Assembly: GCA_965113315.1 (NCBI GenBank)
Contig: OZ220368.1
From: Podarcis vaucheri
Lineage: Eukaryota
Strand: one strand, 5' to 3'
DNA length: 64,000 nucleotides
Positions 2,876 to 64,000 of the stretch are shown one piece after another (within the stretch, counting starts at the first letter, position 1; each line of letters begins with the position of its first letter). The position numbers were made by a program, and so were the translations under genes. The notes beneath the pieces are model-generated. The model was given only the letters and a program-made list of their open reading frames with translations, had not been told where the DNA came from and searched no databases.

Positions 2876-3066
2876 GGGAATGCACTCCACAGCTCAGGAG
2901 TGCAGCATGTGGTCATCATGGTTCCAGGTTCAAGCCCTGGCATCTCCAGGTAGGGCTAGCAGGGTCCCATGTCTGAAATCCTGGAGAGTCACTGCCAGTC
3001 AGTTTAGATGATACAGAGTATAGATTAATGGTCTGACTCAGTGTTTGGTAGCTTCCGATGTTCCTG
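2876..3066 (+). mobile_element. tRNA-derived SINE (Squam3-like), old copy
   Basis: AGCTCAG...GGTTCAAGCCC A/B boxes followed by GGCATCTCCAGGTAGGGCT...CCTGGAGAG.CACTGCCAGTCAG body. Confidence 0.75.
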
Positions 3067-5083
3067 TGTCCTCCTACTTTACAGAAGACAATCCATTATC
3101 TGAAGGGCTTTGAGAGGACAGACCTTTGTGGAAGTTCTCTATTTGAAGGGCTACTCAGTCCAAGTCCAGTTTAAAGATAAAGAACCACAAGAAAGGAGAG
3201 CAGGAAGGGCTTTGTAATTGCCCATCAATTGTTAGCACATGGGCAGCAAGCAAAGCCGGCACTCAGGACACCAGGGCACAGTCTTATCCACCATAGTAAG
3301 AGGTATTTCTATTTAAACATTTTGTTCTTGATTCCCCAACATTTAAGTTGCCTATGTGAAAATCACTTGGTGAATAGGCTCGTCTACCTCTATTTTAATA
3401 TAATTTAAGATATGTGAGGAAAGAGGGGCTATCCCAATTGTAAAAACAGAAAACTTTATAAGGACCTAGGTCCTGCTGCGTGGCCAGCAATTTTTGCTAA
3501 ATTATTAAGGTTGAATCTTTAATGAAATCACAAGCCTATTTGCTTCATAAATGTTGCATGGCATTTTGAGAGAGAGGGATCTTACAAAATTTCCAAAATG
3601 GAATTTAGTGCTCAAATAATGTTAGAAATCTTTGGCATGAGAAATCTGGTGTCAGCACAGGAGATTGGGTTGGGTGACATTTAAGTAGGCTTTTCCCCCA
3701 GCCACATAATCGTAATGAATTTCCCGATACAGCGTTGTGCCATACAAACCCAGGGAATTCATCACACTAGAAGTTCATGGCAAAATTAATTCACAAATCA
3801 AACTTGGGCAGCACTTTCTTTGACAAATATGCATATTTGAATTCACATCAGGCAAACTGATGAGACCTGTTGAATTTGAAATTGGCTGTGAACATTAGTT
3901 CAGCATCAATCAATGAAAGAAGTTCTCTTCACAAACTCCATTCTATTAGGCACAAAAATGTTATTCCTGCCACCAGTGCCTATGTCCTGGTACTGTTGCT
4001 TCATTCAATAGTGAGAAAATGGCTGCCCTGTACCCTGACAATGGGATCATTTCTTTCACTCTCTGGACCTTGGGATCCTCATCCTGGCTGTACCAGCCCT
4101 TCTCTTCCCTATTGGCTGGCTGTGAATTTGGTTGTGCCTACACATGAAGCATAATGATCCTCTCCCCACCAAACCTTTGGAGTATTACCTGAGTGCCATT
4201 GTGCCTATCTTGTCACTGTTCTCTTCATAGGAGAATTGCTGTGGTGTTAAGAACTCATAAGGATAATGAACAAGTCCCATATATGTATAATATAGAAAAC
4301 AGAAACTTTGTTACCAACACATCTAACTGAAGCCCAAAGCTTATTCCACCAAGAGATACCTAGGACTCAGCTATACAGCTGCAAATAAAATGTTTTAAGT
4401 GTGTTTTAAGTGCAATATACAATGTGGCACTAGCTGGCGATGGTGAGCCTTATGGAAAATTCAATGTATTTTTAAAAACGCTTTTAAAAAAGCATTTTCA
4501 GAATGGTTTTTATATGTGTGTAGATTCCATCCTAGTTTTGAGCTGCATTTGTTTGGTTAGAGCTTTGCCAAATCAGTCGTGAGCACAACCTCTGGGCCGA
4601 ATAGGTTCTGATGCCATCACTCCTTGGTCCACTTTTGAATACCTGGCTAGCTTATCAACACTTCTACTCTGCCACGCTCTAAATGCCTTCTTCCTGTTGC
4701 TCTTGCCTACCTCTGCTTACTTTGATTCCTATGTATTCTGGCCACTGTGATTTATTGCTGCTGCTGTAGTCCATTTAGATGCTTTTATTTATTATTTTTC
4801 TGAACTGGTCTTTGACCGTAATAATAAATTACTATTACTTATTTATTATTTGTTACTCTGATATGTATGGACTTGGGTATTATTAATGTACTGTTGTATT
4901 TGATTGTTGATAGGGGCCTTGCAGGCGCCATTGAGTCTGAAATGTGGGGCACAAATATTCAATTAAATAACTCTCGGGATCTGCACTGATTCTCACACTC
5001 CTAGAGGGAAGGAGCTGCAGCTCAGTGGTACAATGTCTGTTTTGCATGTGGATGATCCCAGGTTCAATCCCCAGCATCTCCAG

Positions 5084-5315
5084 GTAGGCCTGGGAAAAGA
5101 ACTTCCTGTCTAAAATCCTGGAGAACCACTACCAGTCAATGTGGACAATACAACGTAGACATTGGCTGGCCCAATGATTTGACCTGGTGTAAGACAGATT
5201 CCTGTCTTACACCAGGTCAAATCATTGGGCCAGCCAATGTCTACGTTGTATTGTCCACATTGACTGGTAGTGGTTCTCCAGGATTTTAGACAGGAAGTTC
5301 TTTTCCCAGGCCTAC
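5084..5315. repeat. Perfect 114-bp inverted repeat with 4-nt loop
   Basis: Arm 5084-5197 is the reverse complement of 5202-5315; loop ATTC. Confidence 0.97.
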
Positions 5316-5683
5316 GGAGGGACGCGGGTGGCGCTGTGGGCTAAAGCCTCAGCGCCTAGGGCTTGCCGATCGAAAGGTCGGCGGTTCGAATCCCCGCGGC
5401 GGGGTGCGCTCCCGCTGCTCGGTCCCAGCGCCTGCCCACCTAGCAGTTCGAAAGCACCCCCGGGGGCAAGTAGATAAATAGGTACCGCTTACCAGCGGGA
5501 AGGTAAACGGCGTTCCGTGTGCTGCGCTGGCTCGCCAGAGCAGCGTTATCACGCTGGCCACGTGACCCGGAAGTGTCTGCGGACAGCGCTGGCCCCCGGC
5601 CAATAGATGTGAGATGGGCGCACAAACCCCAGAGTCTGGCAAGACTGGCCCGTTCGGGCAGGGGTACCTTTACCTTTACCTTT
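5316..5683 (+). mobile_element. Sauria SINE, full length, young
   Basis: GGGACGCGGGTGGCGCTGTGGG head, GGTTCGAATCC B-box, (ACCTTT)n tail, CpGs intact; TSD TAAGACAGATTCCT at 5190-5203 and 5683-5696. Confidence 0.95.
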
Positions 5684-5846
5684 AAGACAGATTCCTATGT
5701 ACCTGTTCCATGTCTGGAACTATCCCTATTTGTCCTGCCTCAACCTGTGTCCCTGCTGTTTGTTTTCTACTCATTCTTGACCCTCAGTAGTGATATACTT
5801 TGGAGATCCTGATTCTCTGGAGGCCTCATCTTACCTTGAAGCACTG

Positions 5847-6800
5847 TGCCTTGGCTCCCACCACAACAGAGGCTCTTACTTGACAATAAGGAAAAAAACT
5901 TCTATTGAGGCAGAGGAAAGGTATAGGCTCAGCAACAGGGAGTGATACTGTCACAGCAGGCTAAGAAGCAGGAAAAGTGAGACTAGGTGGGCTAGAAGCA
6001 GAGGTCCAAGTTTGAGGAGTCCAAGATCAGGGCAAGAAACTCTGAACAACAGGGAAGCAACAGAGCTGTCCCAGAGGAATGGCCCCAACTTTTCAAAGGT
6101 GAGGCAAGGTGATCTCACTCGTGGGACTCCTGTGCCTTGCAATACTGTTGAGAGTGCAGGCATGCACTATGTTGGGGAGGATGGGTCTGTTTCCTGTCAC
6201 AGGAGCGCCACCAAGTCCTGGGTGACCAAGTTGTGCCCTCCCCTTCCCAGGGGTGGATTCTGGGCACTGGGCCAAGAAAGCACCATCTCCAAGCCTGGTA
6301 CGTGAGGCACTGGGCTTTGGGAAGGAGGTGTGAGGCTCTGGTAGGGTCCTAGAGTCCTTCCACCTCCTTCCCAAAGCCTGGTAAGTGTTTTCCCAGCTTG
6401 GGAAAGAGGCGGGCTCTGGGACTCTGTCAGGGTCTCTGCCTGTTTTCCAAAGCCTGGCACCTCGTGTAGCAGGATTTGGGAAGGCAGCAAGAGGGCTGGG
6501 GGCAAAATTTGACCTCACACAGGGCATCTCACACCATAGTACCTACGTCTGCCACTGCCCTTCTGGCTCCTGTTCCTCCACCACCAACAGTTAGTTGACA
6601 CCCTCCCCTCATTCCACTGAGGCTCTCCTCCTCCCAGGAGGGAAGTGAGGAGGCAGAACTCCAGCTTCTGCATCCAGAGAAGCTGTATCCTAGGAGAGAG
6701 AAGCACCCATTTTATCCAGCCTCTGTTCCTTGCCCCCCCCCCATTGCATGCTTCTCTTCTCCCTCCTCATCCATCTCTGCCTGCGTTGGGACTCATGGCA
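5847..6800 (-). mobile_element. Solo LTR (about 954 bp)
   Basis: TGCC...GGCA termini with perfect 5-bp TSD CACTG (5842-5846, 6801-6805); orientation tentative. Confidence 0.7.
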
Positions 6801-11093: not shown

Positions 11094-11400
11094 GGGCTTA
11101 TCCACACTTAACTTTTGACCCACTCTTTCCAGGTACAGGTCCATGCTTTAAAGCTCTGTGTCTGAGTGCCTCCCTTTCCCCCCCTCTGGAGCTCTTCCAG
11201 CAAAAACCCATTCTTTAAAGCTGAATTGGAGCAAATGGCTATTTGGGTTTTCCATGGATTACCATTACTATTCAGCTTTAAAGAGTAAATTTTCACAGAG
11301 AAGGATACAAAGCCAAAAGGGGGGGGGCACTCAGACACAGAGCTTCAAAGCATGGACCATGCCTGGAAAGTGCAGAGGAAAGATAAGTGTGGATAAGCCC
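11094..11400. mobile_element. PIF/Harbinger MITE
   Basis: TIR GGGCTTATCCACACTTA, extended inverted arms, TTA TSD on both sides; related partial copy starts at 58241. Confidence 0.85.
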
Positions 11401-13063: not shown

Positions 13064-13795
13064 GGGACGCAGGTGGCACTGTGGCCTAAACCACTGAGCC
13101 TAGGGCTTGCCGATCGGAAGGTCGGCGGTTTGAATTCCCGCGATGGGGTGAGCTCCCATTGCTTGGTCCCTGCTCCTGTCAACCTAGCAGTTCGAAAGCA
13201 CATCAAAGTGCAAGTAGATAAATAGGTACCGCTCTGGCGGGAAGGTAAACGGCGTTTCCATGCACTGCTCTGGTTTTGCAAGAAGCGGCTTAGTCATGCT
13301 GGCTACTGTCTGCGGACAAATGTCGGCTCCCTCAGCCAGTAAAGCGAGATGAGCGCCGCAACCCCAGAGTCGTTCACGACTGGACTTAACTGTCTTTTTT
13401 TTTTTTAGAAGTTTTTATTGGATTTTACAAAGTATAGAAGAAATGCAAAGACAGGAGCAAGAAAAAAAAATAGAAGCACAAATACATACTACAAAATACA
13501 ACAACACACACATTAAGCACAAAAGATACAAAATACATACGTTAAAAACTAATAACAAAAAGAAAAGCACATATAAGAAAAAACACAAAAATTCCTTCTT
13601 TCTTAATTTTAGATCTTAAATTCACATATTCTCCTGACTTAAAGGATCCTACAGAGAGTCTGTGCTCCAGACCCTGATTGGTACTAGCTAATTTTGGTAT
13701 AAAAGGTAAAGGCAAAGGACCCCTGACAGTTAAGTCCAGTCCACGACTTAACTTTCAGGGGTCTTAACTTTCAGGGGTCCTTTGCCTTTACCTTT
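13064..13795 (+). mobile_element. Sauria SINE interrupted by a poly(A) retroelement and an inverted duplication
   Basis: Head at 13064, tail ends 13795; TSD TATACCAAAATT at 13051-13062 and 13796-13807. Confidence 0.92.
13395..13638 (-). mobile_element. Poly(A)-tailed retroelement 3' UTR fragment (L1/Tx1-like or retrocopy)
   Basis: T12 run at 13395-13406, minus-strand AATAAA just inside, U-rich body on minus. Confidence 0.7.
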
Positions 13796-13858
13796 TATAC
13801 CAAAATTAGCTAGTACCAATCAGGGTCTGGAGCACAGACTCTCTGTAGGATCCTTTAA
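13639..13858. repeat. 96-bp inverted repeat (1 mismatch), 28-nt spacer
   Basis: 13639-13734 is the reverse complement of 13763-13858; spacer holds a 16-bp tandem duplication CTTAACTTTCAGGGGT. Confidence 0.93.
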
Positions 13859-44999: not shown

Positions 45000-45564
45000 C
45001 AGTGGTAACTTGGGTTACATACGCTTCAGGTTACATACGCTTCAGGTTACACACTCCGCTAACCCAGAAATAGTGCTTCAGGTTAAGAACTTTGCTTCAG
45101 GATAAGAACAGAAATCGGGTTCCGGCGGCGCGGCAGCAGCAGGAGGCCCCATTAGCTAAAGTGGTGCTTCAGGTTAAGAACAGTTTCCATGGCTGTTTAA
45201 AGTGGCACAATGCTGCTTTAATCGCTTAGTGCAGATGGAGTCATAGAAGGGGGATTTGGAGAACCCATGAAGTGTGAACCAAGTAAATAACCATTCTGTA
45301 GTATCCTAGTGTGAACTTAGTACAGCGGTACCTCGGGTTACATATGCTTCAGGTTACATATGCTTCAAGTTACAGACTTCGCTAACCCAGAAATAGTGCT
45401 TCAGGTTAAGAACTTTGCTTCAGGATAAGAACAGAGATTGGGTTCTGGCGGCGCAGCAGCAGCAGGAGGCCCCATTACCTAAAGTGGTGCTTCAGGTTAA
45501 GATCAGTTTCAGGTTAAGAACAGACCTCCGGAAAGAATTAAGTACTTAACCCGAGGTACCACTG
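45000..45564. mobile_element. Composite Tigger-like MITE with captured 209-bp tract
   Basis: Outer TIRs with TA at 45000 and 45564; 45180-45388 matches 60901-61109; internal TIR at 45323. Confidence 0.88.
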
Positions 45565-46677
45565 TACGTTGCCCACAATATACCGATGACACACAGCTCT
45601 ACTTCTCCTTGACATACGCAAGCGTGGCTGTGAATGAACTGGGCTTTTCATCTTTTTTGTCATTGTGATCTTGGCTGCTGGTGCACACTTTTTTTTTTTA
45701 CCTGCAGCACTCCAGAGTGAGAGCAAGCATTGCCCTCACTCTAGTTAACACTAGAGTGAGTAACACTAGAGTTACTCTAATTTTCCTACTCATATTGAAA
45801 TATTGCCTCTCAATGAGGCCAAACTTAGATTCAAAACATGTTTCGGGGTATGCATACCCCCAGAAAAAAGTACTGTGCATACAATTTTCCTTTGATGACA
45901 CCATTTTTGTTGTTGTCGTATTCAGAAACGGGCTATTGAATACAAAACAGAAAATATGAAGTTCTGGAGACTTCCAGAGAAAGACCTTCTGTCTGAGACC
46001 TGCTACCACTAATCACAGGCGTTGAACCAGGGAGACCATGGGACTAACGGAGTATAAAGCAATTTCTTATTTTTGGACAGGGTAGAGATTAGAGACAGAT
46101 GGCTTGAGATGAGACCTCGTCTGTATGACCTCCTTACAGCCTGAAATATCACTGGTTCAAACAAAGAAAAGAGCAAACACATATATAAATAAGAGCCTGC
46201 GGAAGGCTAAGGACAAGGCAGCCGAGTGACTCACTCTCCATGCTCCAGGGGATTACAGGAGATGGGTTACTTTAGTCAGGCAAAGTCTTTTGTTTCAACT
46301 TAATGTAGTGTAAAAGGTTTGGATTTATTCTAACAGTATTAAAGGCATGTCCTGGACCCCTCTTAGGCTGTGACTGGGGAGCCCACACATTTGCGTCATT
46401 TGTAAATCCTTTTGGGATTTGCGGGGGCCTGGCTGCGGCATATATTTTACATATACCATTTAAAATAAATAACCTAGCATCCTATTGGGTAGCTTAATGT
46501 GCTGCACTGACCACACTGGCAATGCTTTGATTCTTGGTCAGCAGGGAAACTGAATAACCCTATATCTCACAGCTTCTGGATGCAGTGTGGCCAGTAATGT
46601 TAGCAGCCATCACGTCTGTAGAATGTGGGATATAATCCACTGGGAGCAGTCAAATACAACATTCCTTGTTTTGCTAG

Positions 46678-49416: not shown

Positions 49417-49773
49417 GGGATGCGGGTGGTGCTGTGGGTTAAACCACAGAGCCTAGGACTTGCTGATCAGAAGGTCGGCGGTTCAAATCCCAGTGACGGG
49501 GTGAGCTCCTGTTGCTCGGTCCCAGCTCCTGCCAACCTAGCAGTTTGAAAGCATGTCAAAGTGCAAGTAGATAAATAGGTACCGCTCCGGTGGGAAGGTA
49601 AACGACATTTCCGTGCACTGCTCTGGTTCACCAGAAGCAGCTTAGTCATGCTGGCCACATGACCTGGAAGCTGTACACTGGCTCCCTTGGCCAATAAAGC
49701 GAGATGAGCACCGCAACCCCAGAGTCAGTCACGACTGGACCTAATGGTCAGGGGTCCCTTTACCTTTACCTTT
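49417..49773 (+). mobile_element. Sauria SINE, full length
   Basis: TSD TATATCAGCCAGGG at 49404-49417 and 49773-49786. Confidence 0.95.
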
Positions 49774-50778: not shown

Positions 50779-50910
50779 AGGTAAAAAAGGTAAAGGACTC
50801 CTGGACAGTTAAGTCCAGTCAAGGGCAGCTATGGGGTGTGGCACTCATCTTGCTTTCAGGCCAAGAGAGCCAGCATTTGTCGACAGCCAGCTTTCCGGGT
50901 CATGTAGCAG
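50779..50910 (-). mobile_element. Sauria SINE 3' fragment
   Basis: AAAGGTAAAGGAC.CCTGGACAGTTAAGTCCAGTC reversed tail. Confidence 0.82.
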
Positions 50911-52428: not shown

Positions 52429-52996
52429 TACTCAGTCTGATATCAGTGGAACAATACTACCTACCAGAAAAAGAAAAAGAAAAACATTCCCAGGCAACAG
52501 AATCCCCCCTGCCCCCACCACTAAACATTTGACCATTCAAAATCACTTTTCCCCACTAGTCCTTTCAGATCACAGACCTGATCACAGACCTGAAAGGGCT
52601 AGCAATCACTGATCTAACACCACAGGTAGATTTTTAATGTCATCCAATGTCAGTTTATATATCACTTTCAGTGAAGTCAGTTCATATTTTCAGCTCTGTA
52701 CCACTGAGAAGGGATTGGGGATGCATCCACCTGGGCATGGTGCCAAAGCAGATACAATGCATTTGATCTCCACAAATCAATTCAGGGATCAGGGCAGGGT
52801 TGCACACTGCTGGATTCCCACTCGCCCTCTGGATTCACATATGAAGTGATCTGATGACTGCCTATCTGCCTTGTTGTTTTTCAGTATAAATTTAAGCCCC
52901 TTGCAAGCAGCTAGCTCCTGCTGCCATGTGCATTGAATTTAATGTAACATCCCATTCTAGGAGCGATGGGCCTTGCTGATGTGCTGTCGACTCTCA

Positions 52997-53160
52997 GGGG
53001 AAAGGACTGTAGCTCAGTGGCTGAGCACCTGCTTTTGCATGCAGAAGGTCCCAGGTTCAACCTATGGTATCTTCAGGTAGGGTTGGTTGAGACCCCTGCC
53101 TGAAACCCTGGAGAGGTGCTGCCAGCTAGATGGACCATTGGGTCTGACTCATCTATGTGT
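52997..53160 (+). mobile_element. tRNA-derived SINE (Squam3-like)
   Basis: GTAGCTCAGTGG...TTTGCATGCAGAAGGTCCCAGGTTCAA...CCTGCCTGAAACCCTGGAGAG. Confidence 0.82.
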
Positions 53161-57429: not shown

Positions 57430-57605
57430 AAGGTAAAGGTAAAGGTACCCCTGCCCGAACGGGCCAGTCTTGACAGGCTCTGGGGTTTGTGCGCCCATCT
57501 CACATCTATTGGCCGGGGGCCAGCGCTGTCCGGAGACACTTTCGGGTCACGTGGCCAGCGTGACAAAGCTGCATCTAGCGAGCCAGCGCAGCACACGGAA
57601 CGCCG
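57430..57605 (-). mobile_element. Sauria SINE, 5'-truncated
   Basis: Reversed (ACCTTT)n tail; TSD GGCAAACACCACTA at 57416-57429 and 57606-57619. Confidence 0.93.
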
Positions 57606-62717: not shown

Positions 62718-63514
62718 GGTGCTTTCGGCTTCTTGTTACTGGAACAGAGCAGAGTCTGGTGTTTGAGTTCCTATAAATACTGTTGAGGGGTGTGGTGTAT
62801 AGCCTCCAACGTTCTGGGCAGAGAGGAAGTTCCTAGATTAGTGTGCCTTTTCTTCTTTTGTTCCTTAATTACTTGAGGGATATCTTGGGTGATTTCATGA
62901 GTGATATTCTGAATATCACTGGGTGGGTCATTAAGTGTAGATTAGTTGCTAAAGCTTTCGTGTCTTGACCTCTTGAGCTTGTGAAGAGTTTTTCTGAGAA
63001 GATGGCTGTGCTGCATTTAGTTGTGCTCTGGCTTGGCTTCGTGTATAGGGGCGAGCTATGGTTTTGTGCCTTGTGCCAGCCAGATCTGTGTAGGGATTGC
63101 AGGGGGGTGCAGCATCCGGAGGTGCCACTATAGTTTGGCTACTGGATGGAGTCTGTAATATGTCTGTGGAGAGGGTCTGGGTTTGGGTCTGGTATGGTTG
63201 ATTGGTGACGGCGTTCTGTGTGCCTCTGGTTCTGGTGTCGGTTTTTGTGGGGAGGGCTAATTTCCAGATGTCTGGCAGGCGGGACGTGTCGTCACGCTTG
63301 TTCATGTTGTGAGGGTGTTTCTCTATCTCGATGGCTTCCATGATTATTCTCTTGTGGTGATGTTCCATGTTAAAGAGCAATTTGGAATCTGCAAAATTAA
63401 TTTCGTGTCCTGTTTCTTTCATGTGTTGGAAAAGAGAGGAAGTTTTTTCTTCTTTTTTGACGGCATTCTTGTGTTCTGCGATACGTGCATTTATTCGTCT
63501 GTTTGTTTGTCCAA

Positions 63515-64000
63515 AAAGAAACACCCCCCAAAAACCAAGACACAGAAGAAAACAATGGCATGGCCCTCCTTCCTTATATCAAGGGCACTACAGACAAAAT
63601 CAGCAAAATCCTCCATAAACACAATATCAAAACAGCCTTCTGCACCAACCAAAAAATAGCCAATATCCTCAGAAACCCAAAAGACAAAATCCAGCTGGAA
63701 AACCAAGGGGTCTATGAAATACCCTGCAAAGTCTGCCCAGCCACGTACATTGGACAAACAAACAGACGAATAAATGCACGTATCGCAGAACACAAGAATG
63801 CCGTCAAAAAAGAAGAAAAAACTTCCTCTCTTTCCAACACATGAAAGAAACAGGACACGAAATTAATTTTGCAGATTCCAAATTGCTCTTTAACATGGAA
63901 CATCACCACAAGAGAATAATCATGGAAGCCATCGAGATAGAGAAACACCCTCACAACATGAACAAGCGTGACGACACGTCCCGCCTGCCAGACATCTGGA
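63515..64000 (+). pseudogene. Penelope ORF fragment: RT thumb/linker plus GIY-YIG endonuclease (frameshift near 63832)
   Basis: LPYIKGTTDKISKIL...GVYEIPCKVCPATYIGQTNRRINARIAEH; the left arm continues H...HEINF...EAIEIEKH...MNKRD. Confidence 0.88.

Follow-up and report, generated by a model that had tools for sequence, protein, structure and literature searches.

Among human L1 insertions, Mendez-Dorantes and colleagues describe cases with an inverted genomic duplication on the reciprocal end, found in an induced clone and in a tumour (bioRxiv 10.1101/2024.12.14.628481). In these cases the duplication is preserved and the inversion point has a small hairpin with 2-bp homology; the model put forward for them holds that the reciprocal 3' end self-anneals, primes synthesis and is then ligated to the primary (cDNA) end (10.1101/2024.12.14.628481). 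For insertions made with the R2 protein in human cells (PRINT), 'snap-back' 5' junctions have been reported that contain reverse-complemented cDNA or nearby target sequence (PMC11371274, PMC11331408). Among the activities of the L1 protein ORF2p are hairpin extension, synthesis on DNA templates, untemplated base addition and template switching (PMC10830420). Pol theta starts stem-loop synthesis from two terminal base pairs (PMC11292364), and fold-back inversions in yeast, 2 to ~150 bp long with a median homology of 2 bp, need Pol delta and end-joining (PMC11724301). To date, evidence for the resolution of insertion intermediates by fold-back has come from engineered human cells and from tumours; for SINE insertions, and for germline or evolutionary data, our literature search found nothing specific on fold-back inverted flanks, and junctions of inverted, palindromic or hairpin type go unmentioned in a 2026 survey of where Sauria SINEs insert. 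Sauria SINEs finish in (ACCTTT)n, as described by Nakatsuka and Ohshima, and their target-site duplications open with the T of a TA located about one helical turn 3' of a short T-run, the 'Tn-TA' signature (PMC13295347).

The locus described here occupies positions 5003-5716 of the window, by which we mean the whole 64,000-nt stretch of Podarcis vaucheri DNA that was analyzed (contig OZ220368.1). Read from left to right between 4800 and 5900, the sequence consists of an older SINE, a 14-mer, an inverted copy of the flank, the trinucleotide GGA, a Sauria SINE, a second copy of the 14-mer and the rest of the older SINE (Table 1). The two arms of the palindrome (5084-5197 and 5202-5315) are exact reverse complements at 114 of 114 positions around a 4-nt loop, ATTC (5198-5201); direct reading, a repeat search and a script agree on this, confirming the perfect 114-bp inverted repeat reported in the original prediction. 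Complementarity ends abruptly at the outer ends of the arms, where the first three outward positions are all mismatched. A perfect inverted repeat of 114 nt cannot have arisen by chance in 64 kb, and as a single strand the region is predicted to fold with -154 kcal/mol (z = -32 relative to shuffled sequences). The 14-mer, TAAGACAGATTCCT, is present at 5190-5203 and 5683-5696 (14/14 identical, with no extension on either side); the first T of the right copy is ambiguous with the last T of the SINE tail. Because the left copy of the 14-mer spans the palindrome centre, the new sequence is limited to the 112 nt at 5204-5315. The predicted order of flank, target-site duplication, inverted flank of ~112 nt, SINE and target-site duplication is thereby upheld, together with its coordinates.

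The script counted no N in the 64-kb window, and there are no gaps near the locus. The region looks non-coding. Of twelve ORFs of ≥130 aa, ten were searched against Pfam, which returned no credible domain and no intact reverse-transcriptase ORF, and exact look-up of ten ORFs on or around the locus found none of them in the protein collection. A locus-specific 24-mer and a 23-nt Sauria core had 0 matches in the metagenome collection, and the Sauria core also had 0 matches in the prokaryote-genome and viral collections. In the older SINE, the tRNA-like head matched by Rfam (5011-5082) stops two bases short of the outer arm edge at 5084; this closeness may reflect an influence on the point at which synthesis or resection stopped, or may be coincidence.

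Table 1. Features of the SINE insertion and its flanking palindrome (positions in the 64-kb window).
Feature	Position	Strand	Evidence
Older tRNA-derived SINE head, not duplicated	5003-5083	+	Rfam tRNA-like match, 24.1 bits, under gathering score
Left arm, original target DNA (older SINE body), template	5084-5197	+	114/114 against 5202-5315; colinear with paralogues
Bov-B endonuclease target signature, TTT (5178-5180) and TA (5190-5191)	5178-5191	+	Sequence reading against PMC13295347
Left target-site duplication TAAGACAGATTCCT, includes the fold-back point	5190-5203	+	Perfect 14-nt repeat
Hairpin loop ATTC	5198-5201	+	Repeat search, script, folding
New inverted copy of 5084-5195, 112 nt	5204-5315	+	Script; without counterpart in the paralogous older SINE
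Right arm proper; its first two bases, CT, are part of the duplication	5202-5315	+	Script
GGA filler separating the SINE from the inverted copy	5316-5318	+	Copy alignment, junction reading
Full-length young Sauria-type SINE	5319-5682	+	Alignment to five full-length copies and one 5'-truncated copy
SINE tail (ACCTTT)3	5666-5683	+	Direct reading
Right target-site duplication	5683-5696	+	Perfect 14-nt repeat of 5190-5203
Older SINE tail, continued; once directly 3' of a single 14-mer	5697-5716	+	Paralogue alignment across the virtual junction

The inserted element agrees with Sauria SINEs in its tail, its target and its dispersal: it ends in three ACCTTT units (5666-5683), the TA that opens its duplication (5190-5191) follows a TTT (5178-5180) at a distance of ~10 nt, and seven copies of the SINE are scattered over the 64 kb. 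The six full-length copies share a 23-nt core without any difference (6/6). Relative to the five other full-length copies in the window, the focal SINE is 76-82% identical over the full length, beginning with the first consensus position. Its nearest relative within the window, with 95.5% identity, is a 5'-truncated copy at 57430-57605 (- strand); this copy is a product of the same recently active lineage and has an ordinary junction, with a perfect 14-nt duplication (TAGTGGTGTTTGCC) abutting the element. Duplications are readable at three copies other than the focal one (29179, 49417 and 57605); they are 11-14 nt long and abut the element, and those at 49417 and 57605 start with TA. Since all three lie directly against their elements, the extra 112+3 nt at the focal locus are the exception. 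The other SINE copies open with GGGACGCGGG or GGGATGCGGG immediately 3' of the duplication, and with these as the first bases of the family the focal element starts at ~5319 and the preceding GGA is filler. The SINE that had been placed at 5316-5683 is both full length and young, as stated, with bases 5316-5318 assigned to the filler.

A B-box-like motif, GGTTCGAATCC, can be recognized by eye at ~5387-5397 in the focal SINE; within 5316-5400 neither the Rfam tRNA model (E≤1) nor ARAGORN gave a match or call. The focal SINE contains 35 CpG dinucleotides, with an observed/expected ratio of 0.92 (0.46-0.82 in the older copies and 0.27 in the window). From its high CpG content, perfect duplication and perfect arms, the insertion looks recent, although the perfect arms alone cannot date the event, since gene conversion could preserve the identity of the arms.

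The target of the insertion was an older tRNA-derived SINE, diverged copies of which (~72% identity) are present at 2905-3026 and 52990-53114. We constructed a virtual empty site by deleting 5204-5696 with a script and aligned it to the paralogue at ~3027-3071. The virtual site aligns unbroken through the junction (for the right flank alone, the alignment score of 21 was reached in 5 of 1000 shuffles), whereas in the sequence as assembled only a trivial 7-mer aligned with the paralogue. At the other end, the alignment with the older SINE is continuous over 5083/5084. Because the left arm is colinear with the paralogous copies of the older SINE, we take the left arm as the original and the right arm as the copy; elsewhere in the 64-kb window the arm sequence does not recur. 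To judge from these alignments, the older SINE family would have no palindrome of its own, with the paralogue serving as a proxy for the empty site and not as a substitute for it.

Functional readings of the hairpin were considered and rejected. The Rfam matches to microRNA families over 5153-5244 are all far under their gathering scores and reflect the hairpin shape only, so that a microRNA gene is not indicated. A Pol III cassette for hairpin RNA, driven from the head of the older SINE, is not supported: A- and B-box-like motifs are present, but a TTTT run (5040-5043) in that head, 5' of the palindrome, is a probable Pol III terminator, making read-through from the old SINE promoter unlikely.

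The sequence itself shows how the locus is organized, exactly where its parts begin and end, that the target motif is canonical and that the pre-insertion site was continuous, and with these points in hand we consider it likely that a single retrotransposition event made the whole structure, the upstream target 3' end having folded back and copied itself. In such an event, the Bov-B endonuclease would nick the bottom strand within the older SINE at TTT-N9-T^A (5189/5190), and the SINE RNA would be reverse-transcribed from this nick; we assign the cDNA-priming nick to the bottom strand at 5189/5190 because the SINE tail adjoins the right duplication. A top-strand cut 12-14 nt downstream would leave an upstream ('reciprocal') end with the 3' overhang ...GACAGATTC(CT). 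This end would then fold back, with CT pairing on AG across ATTC, or with no pairing if the cut fell 1-2 nt earlier, and a polymerase would extend it by 112 nt on its own strand, a step that would need the bottom strand to be either resected from its 5' end beforehand or displaced. Candidates for this synthesis are host Pol theta, Pol delta, another polymerase and the Bov-B reverse transcriptase. In the last step, the new end and the 5' end of the full-length SINE copy would be connected through the GGA filler, without microhomology; the lack of homology at the GGA junction suggests end-joining as opposed to annealing. We infer the order of these steps, the polymerase, the exact position of the nick (0-2 nt of pairing) and the joining route.

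Several features of the locus bear on this scheme. The start of the inverted copy coincides exactly with the point at which the upstream 3' overhang would fold, and its end lies 0-3 nt from the SINE 5' end. When the fold-back product is extended on the sequence, the observed duplication, its complement and the complement of the flank are all reproduced. The one-event reading and the call of the duplication are strengthened by the Bov-B/Sauria signature, by the uninterrupted paralogue and by the ordinary junctions elsewhere in the window. Every structural consequence of a snap-back with self-primed copying of the upstream flank, as originally proposed, is found at the locus, and we regard that model as supported. 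The pairing on which it had drawn is also present, with AG (5196-5197) facing CT (5202-5203) across ATTC at the palindrome centre. The extent of pairing at the fold-back point could be 0, 1 or 2 nt, as CT may itself have been copied, and the AG/CT microhomology carries no statistical weight because simple arithmetic gives a dinucleotide of this kind in ~40% of random 14-nt overhangs. Against the model stands the length of the tract: 112 nt is long beside most templated fold-back insertions, which in yeast are mostly <34 bp (PMC11724301). The evidence for fold-back at a SINE also comes from a single locus. We further considered whether the filler could be continued fold-back synthesis, since the complement of 5078-5081 is GGAG and would match GGA(G); this would entail an unexplained skip of 2 nt, and we treat the match as chance.

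With the human L1 cases, the lizard locus shares a preserved duplication, inverted upstream DNA between the duplication and the element, 2-bp pairing and a small hairpin. A single duplication (5190-5203 = 5683-5696) encloses both the element and the inverted copy; the inverted tract begins right after 5203, contiguous with the 3' end of the upstream duplication; and a short microhomology, AG/CT, flanks the small loop ATTC. The human cases are somatic insertions of the L1 clade made by autonomous or reporter elements, whereas the lizard insertion involves a non-autonomous SINE and the machinery of Bov-B, of the RTE clade, presumably in the germline. The R2 snap-back junctions are alike in that reverse-complemented sequence separates the element, at its 5' end, from the upstream target, also after full-length cDNA synthesis. 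They differ in that the primer there is taken to be the cDNA 3' end, while the lizard geometry points to the 3' end of the upstream target; R2, moreover, is site-specific for rDNA and its data come from human cells. Twin priming likewise uses the upstream target 3' end as a primer and yields an inversion within one duplication (PMC2912911), but there the second primer acts on the element RNA and it is element sequence that becomes inverted. No element sequence is inverted at the lizard locus, where the inverted tract is target DNA and the SINE is intact, colinear and full length, and the distinction from twin priming drawn in the original prediction therefore stands.

Fold-back insertions made during break repair resemble the lizard case in their self-annealing over ~2 bp, extension and capture with little or no homology, and they reach lengths of up to ~150 bp. 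Their tracts are mostly ~5-34 bp, however, and arise at breaks made by nucleases or damage, while the lizard break is attributed to a retrotransposon endonuclease. Pairing over 2 bp would be compatible with a Pol theta snap-back, although 112 nt is long for that class. The novelty implied in the original prediction was too strong, since the same outcome is known for human L1 (10.1101/2024.12.14.628481) and snap-back junctions are known for R2 (PMC11371274). The class of mechanism is already known from these two systems; what is new is the SINE, the RTE/Bov-B clade, the host and, presumably, the germline setting.

The same product sequence would result if the folded end, after a fill-in of 6-8 nt, were ligated to the bottom-strand 5' end at the nick and the hairpin so closed were later nicked on the former bottom strand, 114 nt from the tip. 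In that case the bottom strand, flipped over, would form the right arm, which would resemble a very long P-nucleotide tract and would not be a product of new synthesis. This route fits the arms and repeats equally well, requires few nucleotides to be synthesized and no long strand displacement, and the bottom strand at the outer arm edge, ...CCTAC^CTGG, loosely resembles ...CTTA^CACC at the primary site. This likeness to the endonuclease motif is weak, however, and there is no T-run ~10 nt off on that strand. P nucleotides in V(D)J recombination arise by off-centre opening of hairpin coding ends, comprise a few nucleotides and depend on RAG and Artemis; they too are palindromes from a hairpin resolved off its tip, a comparison that applies only to this closed variant, and opening of a hairpin as far as 114 nt from its tip is not expected of any known nuclease. 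The precedents favour primed synthesis (10.1101/2024.12.14.628481; PMC11724301). We regard the closed intermediate as unlikely. Long-read data can contain fold-back chimeras, and a chimeric read or a mis-join could have placed an inverted flank in the consensus; the presence of other palindromes in the window might be seen as pointing the same way. These palindromes nevertheless have a biological logic of their own (element tails at 13639-13858 and, where the window ends, a GIY-YIG element), the sequence nearby is free of gaps and N, and an artefact would have no reason to begin exactly at the 3' end of the duplication, stop ≤3 nt from the SINE and then resume colinearly. An artefact of sequencing or assembly is thus quite unlikely.

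The order of steps is not readable from the sequence alone, and fold-back inversions are known at ordinary breaks (PMC11724301), so that an ordinary SINE insertion could have been followed by a later break, or a template switch in replication, that inverted 112 nt of flank at the junction of duplication and SINE. Both junctions would then coincide by chance, for which we estimate roughly 1 in 10^3 or less per junction within the locus, and all parts of the structure look equally young; we consider such a pair of events very unlikely. A snap-back or template jump of the cDNA 3' end, with reverse transcriptase copying nearby target DNA, is documented for the R2 protein in human cells (PMC11371274, PMC11331408). 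At the lizard locus, if the cDNA took the upstream bottom strand as its template, synthesis would stop at the nick (5189/5190), and because the template ends there, the bases complementary to 5190-5197 and the loop would not be made. An intact left duplication followed by its own complement is not produced in this way, while fold-back of the top strand explains every base. The contiguity of the inverted tract with the end of the duplication points to priming by the reciprocal end, and we find the cDNA route highly improbable here. It is hardly conceivable that the SINE inserted into or beside a palindrome that already existed, or a fold-back or MITE-type transposon: the 14 nt 3' of the SINE tail match the palindrome centre and not the sequence beside the SINE 5' end; the arms, which have no second copy in the window, derive locally from a diverged older SINE, and the paralogue of that SINE lacks the palindrome; and the hallmarks of a MITE are missing, as the arms match only themselves in the window and no duplication surrounds 5084-5315.

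A second palindrome, 8.5 kb away at 13639-13858, was found in the inverted-repeat scan. Here, 63 nt of unique flank (13639-13701) are matched at 63 of 63 positions by an inverted copy (13796-13858). The inner arms (13702-13737 and 13760-13795) are 3' tails of Bov-B/Sauria type arranged head to head, with two mismatches; the centre measures 22 nt and there is a 16-nt tandem duplication at 13748-13779. The junction of flank and tail reads ...ACCTTT|TATACC, again with a TA start, and no target-site duplication was found around 13639-13858. In the simplest reading, which we offer as a lead, an abortive target-primed cDNA of ~40 nt snapped back at its 3' end and copied first the cDNA and then 63 nt of the primer-side flank. 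A break within an older element with fold-back repair would look similar. This palindrome fits the R2 snap-back class better than the focal locus does. The two structures may represent the two kinds of fold-back, of the upstream target end at the focal locus and of the cDNA end at 13639-13858. At 50786-50840 (- strand), an element tail AAAAGGTAAAGGA... is followed by ...CAGTTAAGTCCAGTC; this tail and those at 13639-13858 share ...TTAAGTCCAGTC, which is lacking from the Sauria consensus tail in the window. The sequence at 50786-50840 may be the 3' end of a Bov-B LINE or a second SINE subfamily.

The lizard locus indicates that a fold-back outcome can persist in an assembled animal genome, presumably via the germline, and that this outcome also occurs with the RTE/Bov-B clade of LINEs acting on a SINE. 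An insertion resolved by fold-back yields a long perfect palindrome in one step. Palindromes of such size can extrude cruciforms, stall replication, and be fragile or short-lived; if transcribed, the palindrome would give perfect double-stranded RNA. With its exact boundaries, canonical motif and recent age, the locus provides a good template for genome-wide searches. Because there are two such structures in 64 kb, we tentatively raise the possibility, itself doubtful, that Bov-B-driven intermediates in this squamate lineage are often resolved by fold-back at either broken end. The germline would then steadily gain perfect palindromes of at least 100 bp through the activity of SINEs and LINEs. 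The frequency of such insertions in squamates, and their spectra of arm length, loop and microhomology, would inform how the second half of target-primed integration is completed.

Further inverted repeats occur in the window. The sequence at 63263-64000 contains an inverted repeat with 84 nt at 100% and 195 nt at 94% identity and arms 235-348 nt apart; inside it lies a fragment of a GIY-YIG endonuclease (Pfam PF01541, 23.3 bits) with a frameshift after 63838. The structure is probably an inverted arrangement of a Penelope-like element that the window end interrupts. At 6301-6466 there is an imperfect hairpin with arms of ~17 nt (CTTTGGGAAGGAGGTG / CCACCTCCTTCCCAAAG) and recurring ...AAGCCTGG... 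motifs; it has several sub-threshold matches to microRNA families, and Tandem Repeats Finder reports no array. Two short inverted-repeat pairs, at 11138-11358 (37-nt arms with 95% identity, 147 nt apart) and at 45307-45580 (34-nt arms with 79% identity, 206 nt apart), may be MITE-like elements.
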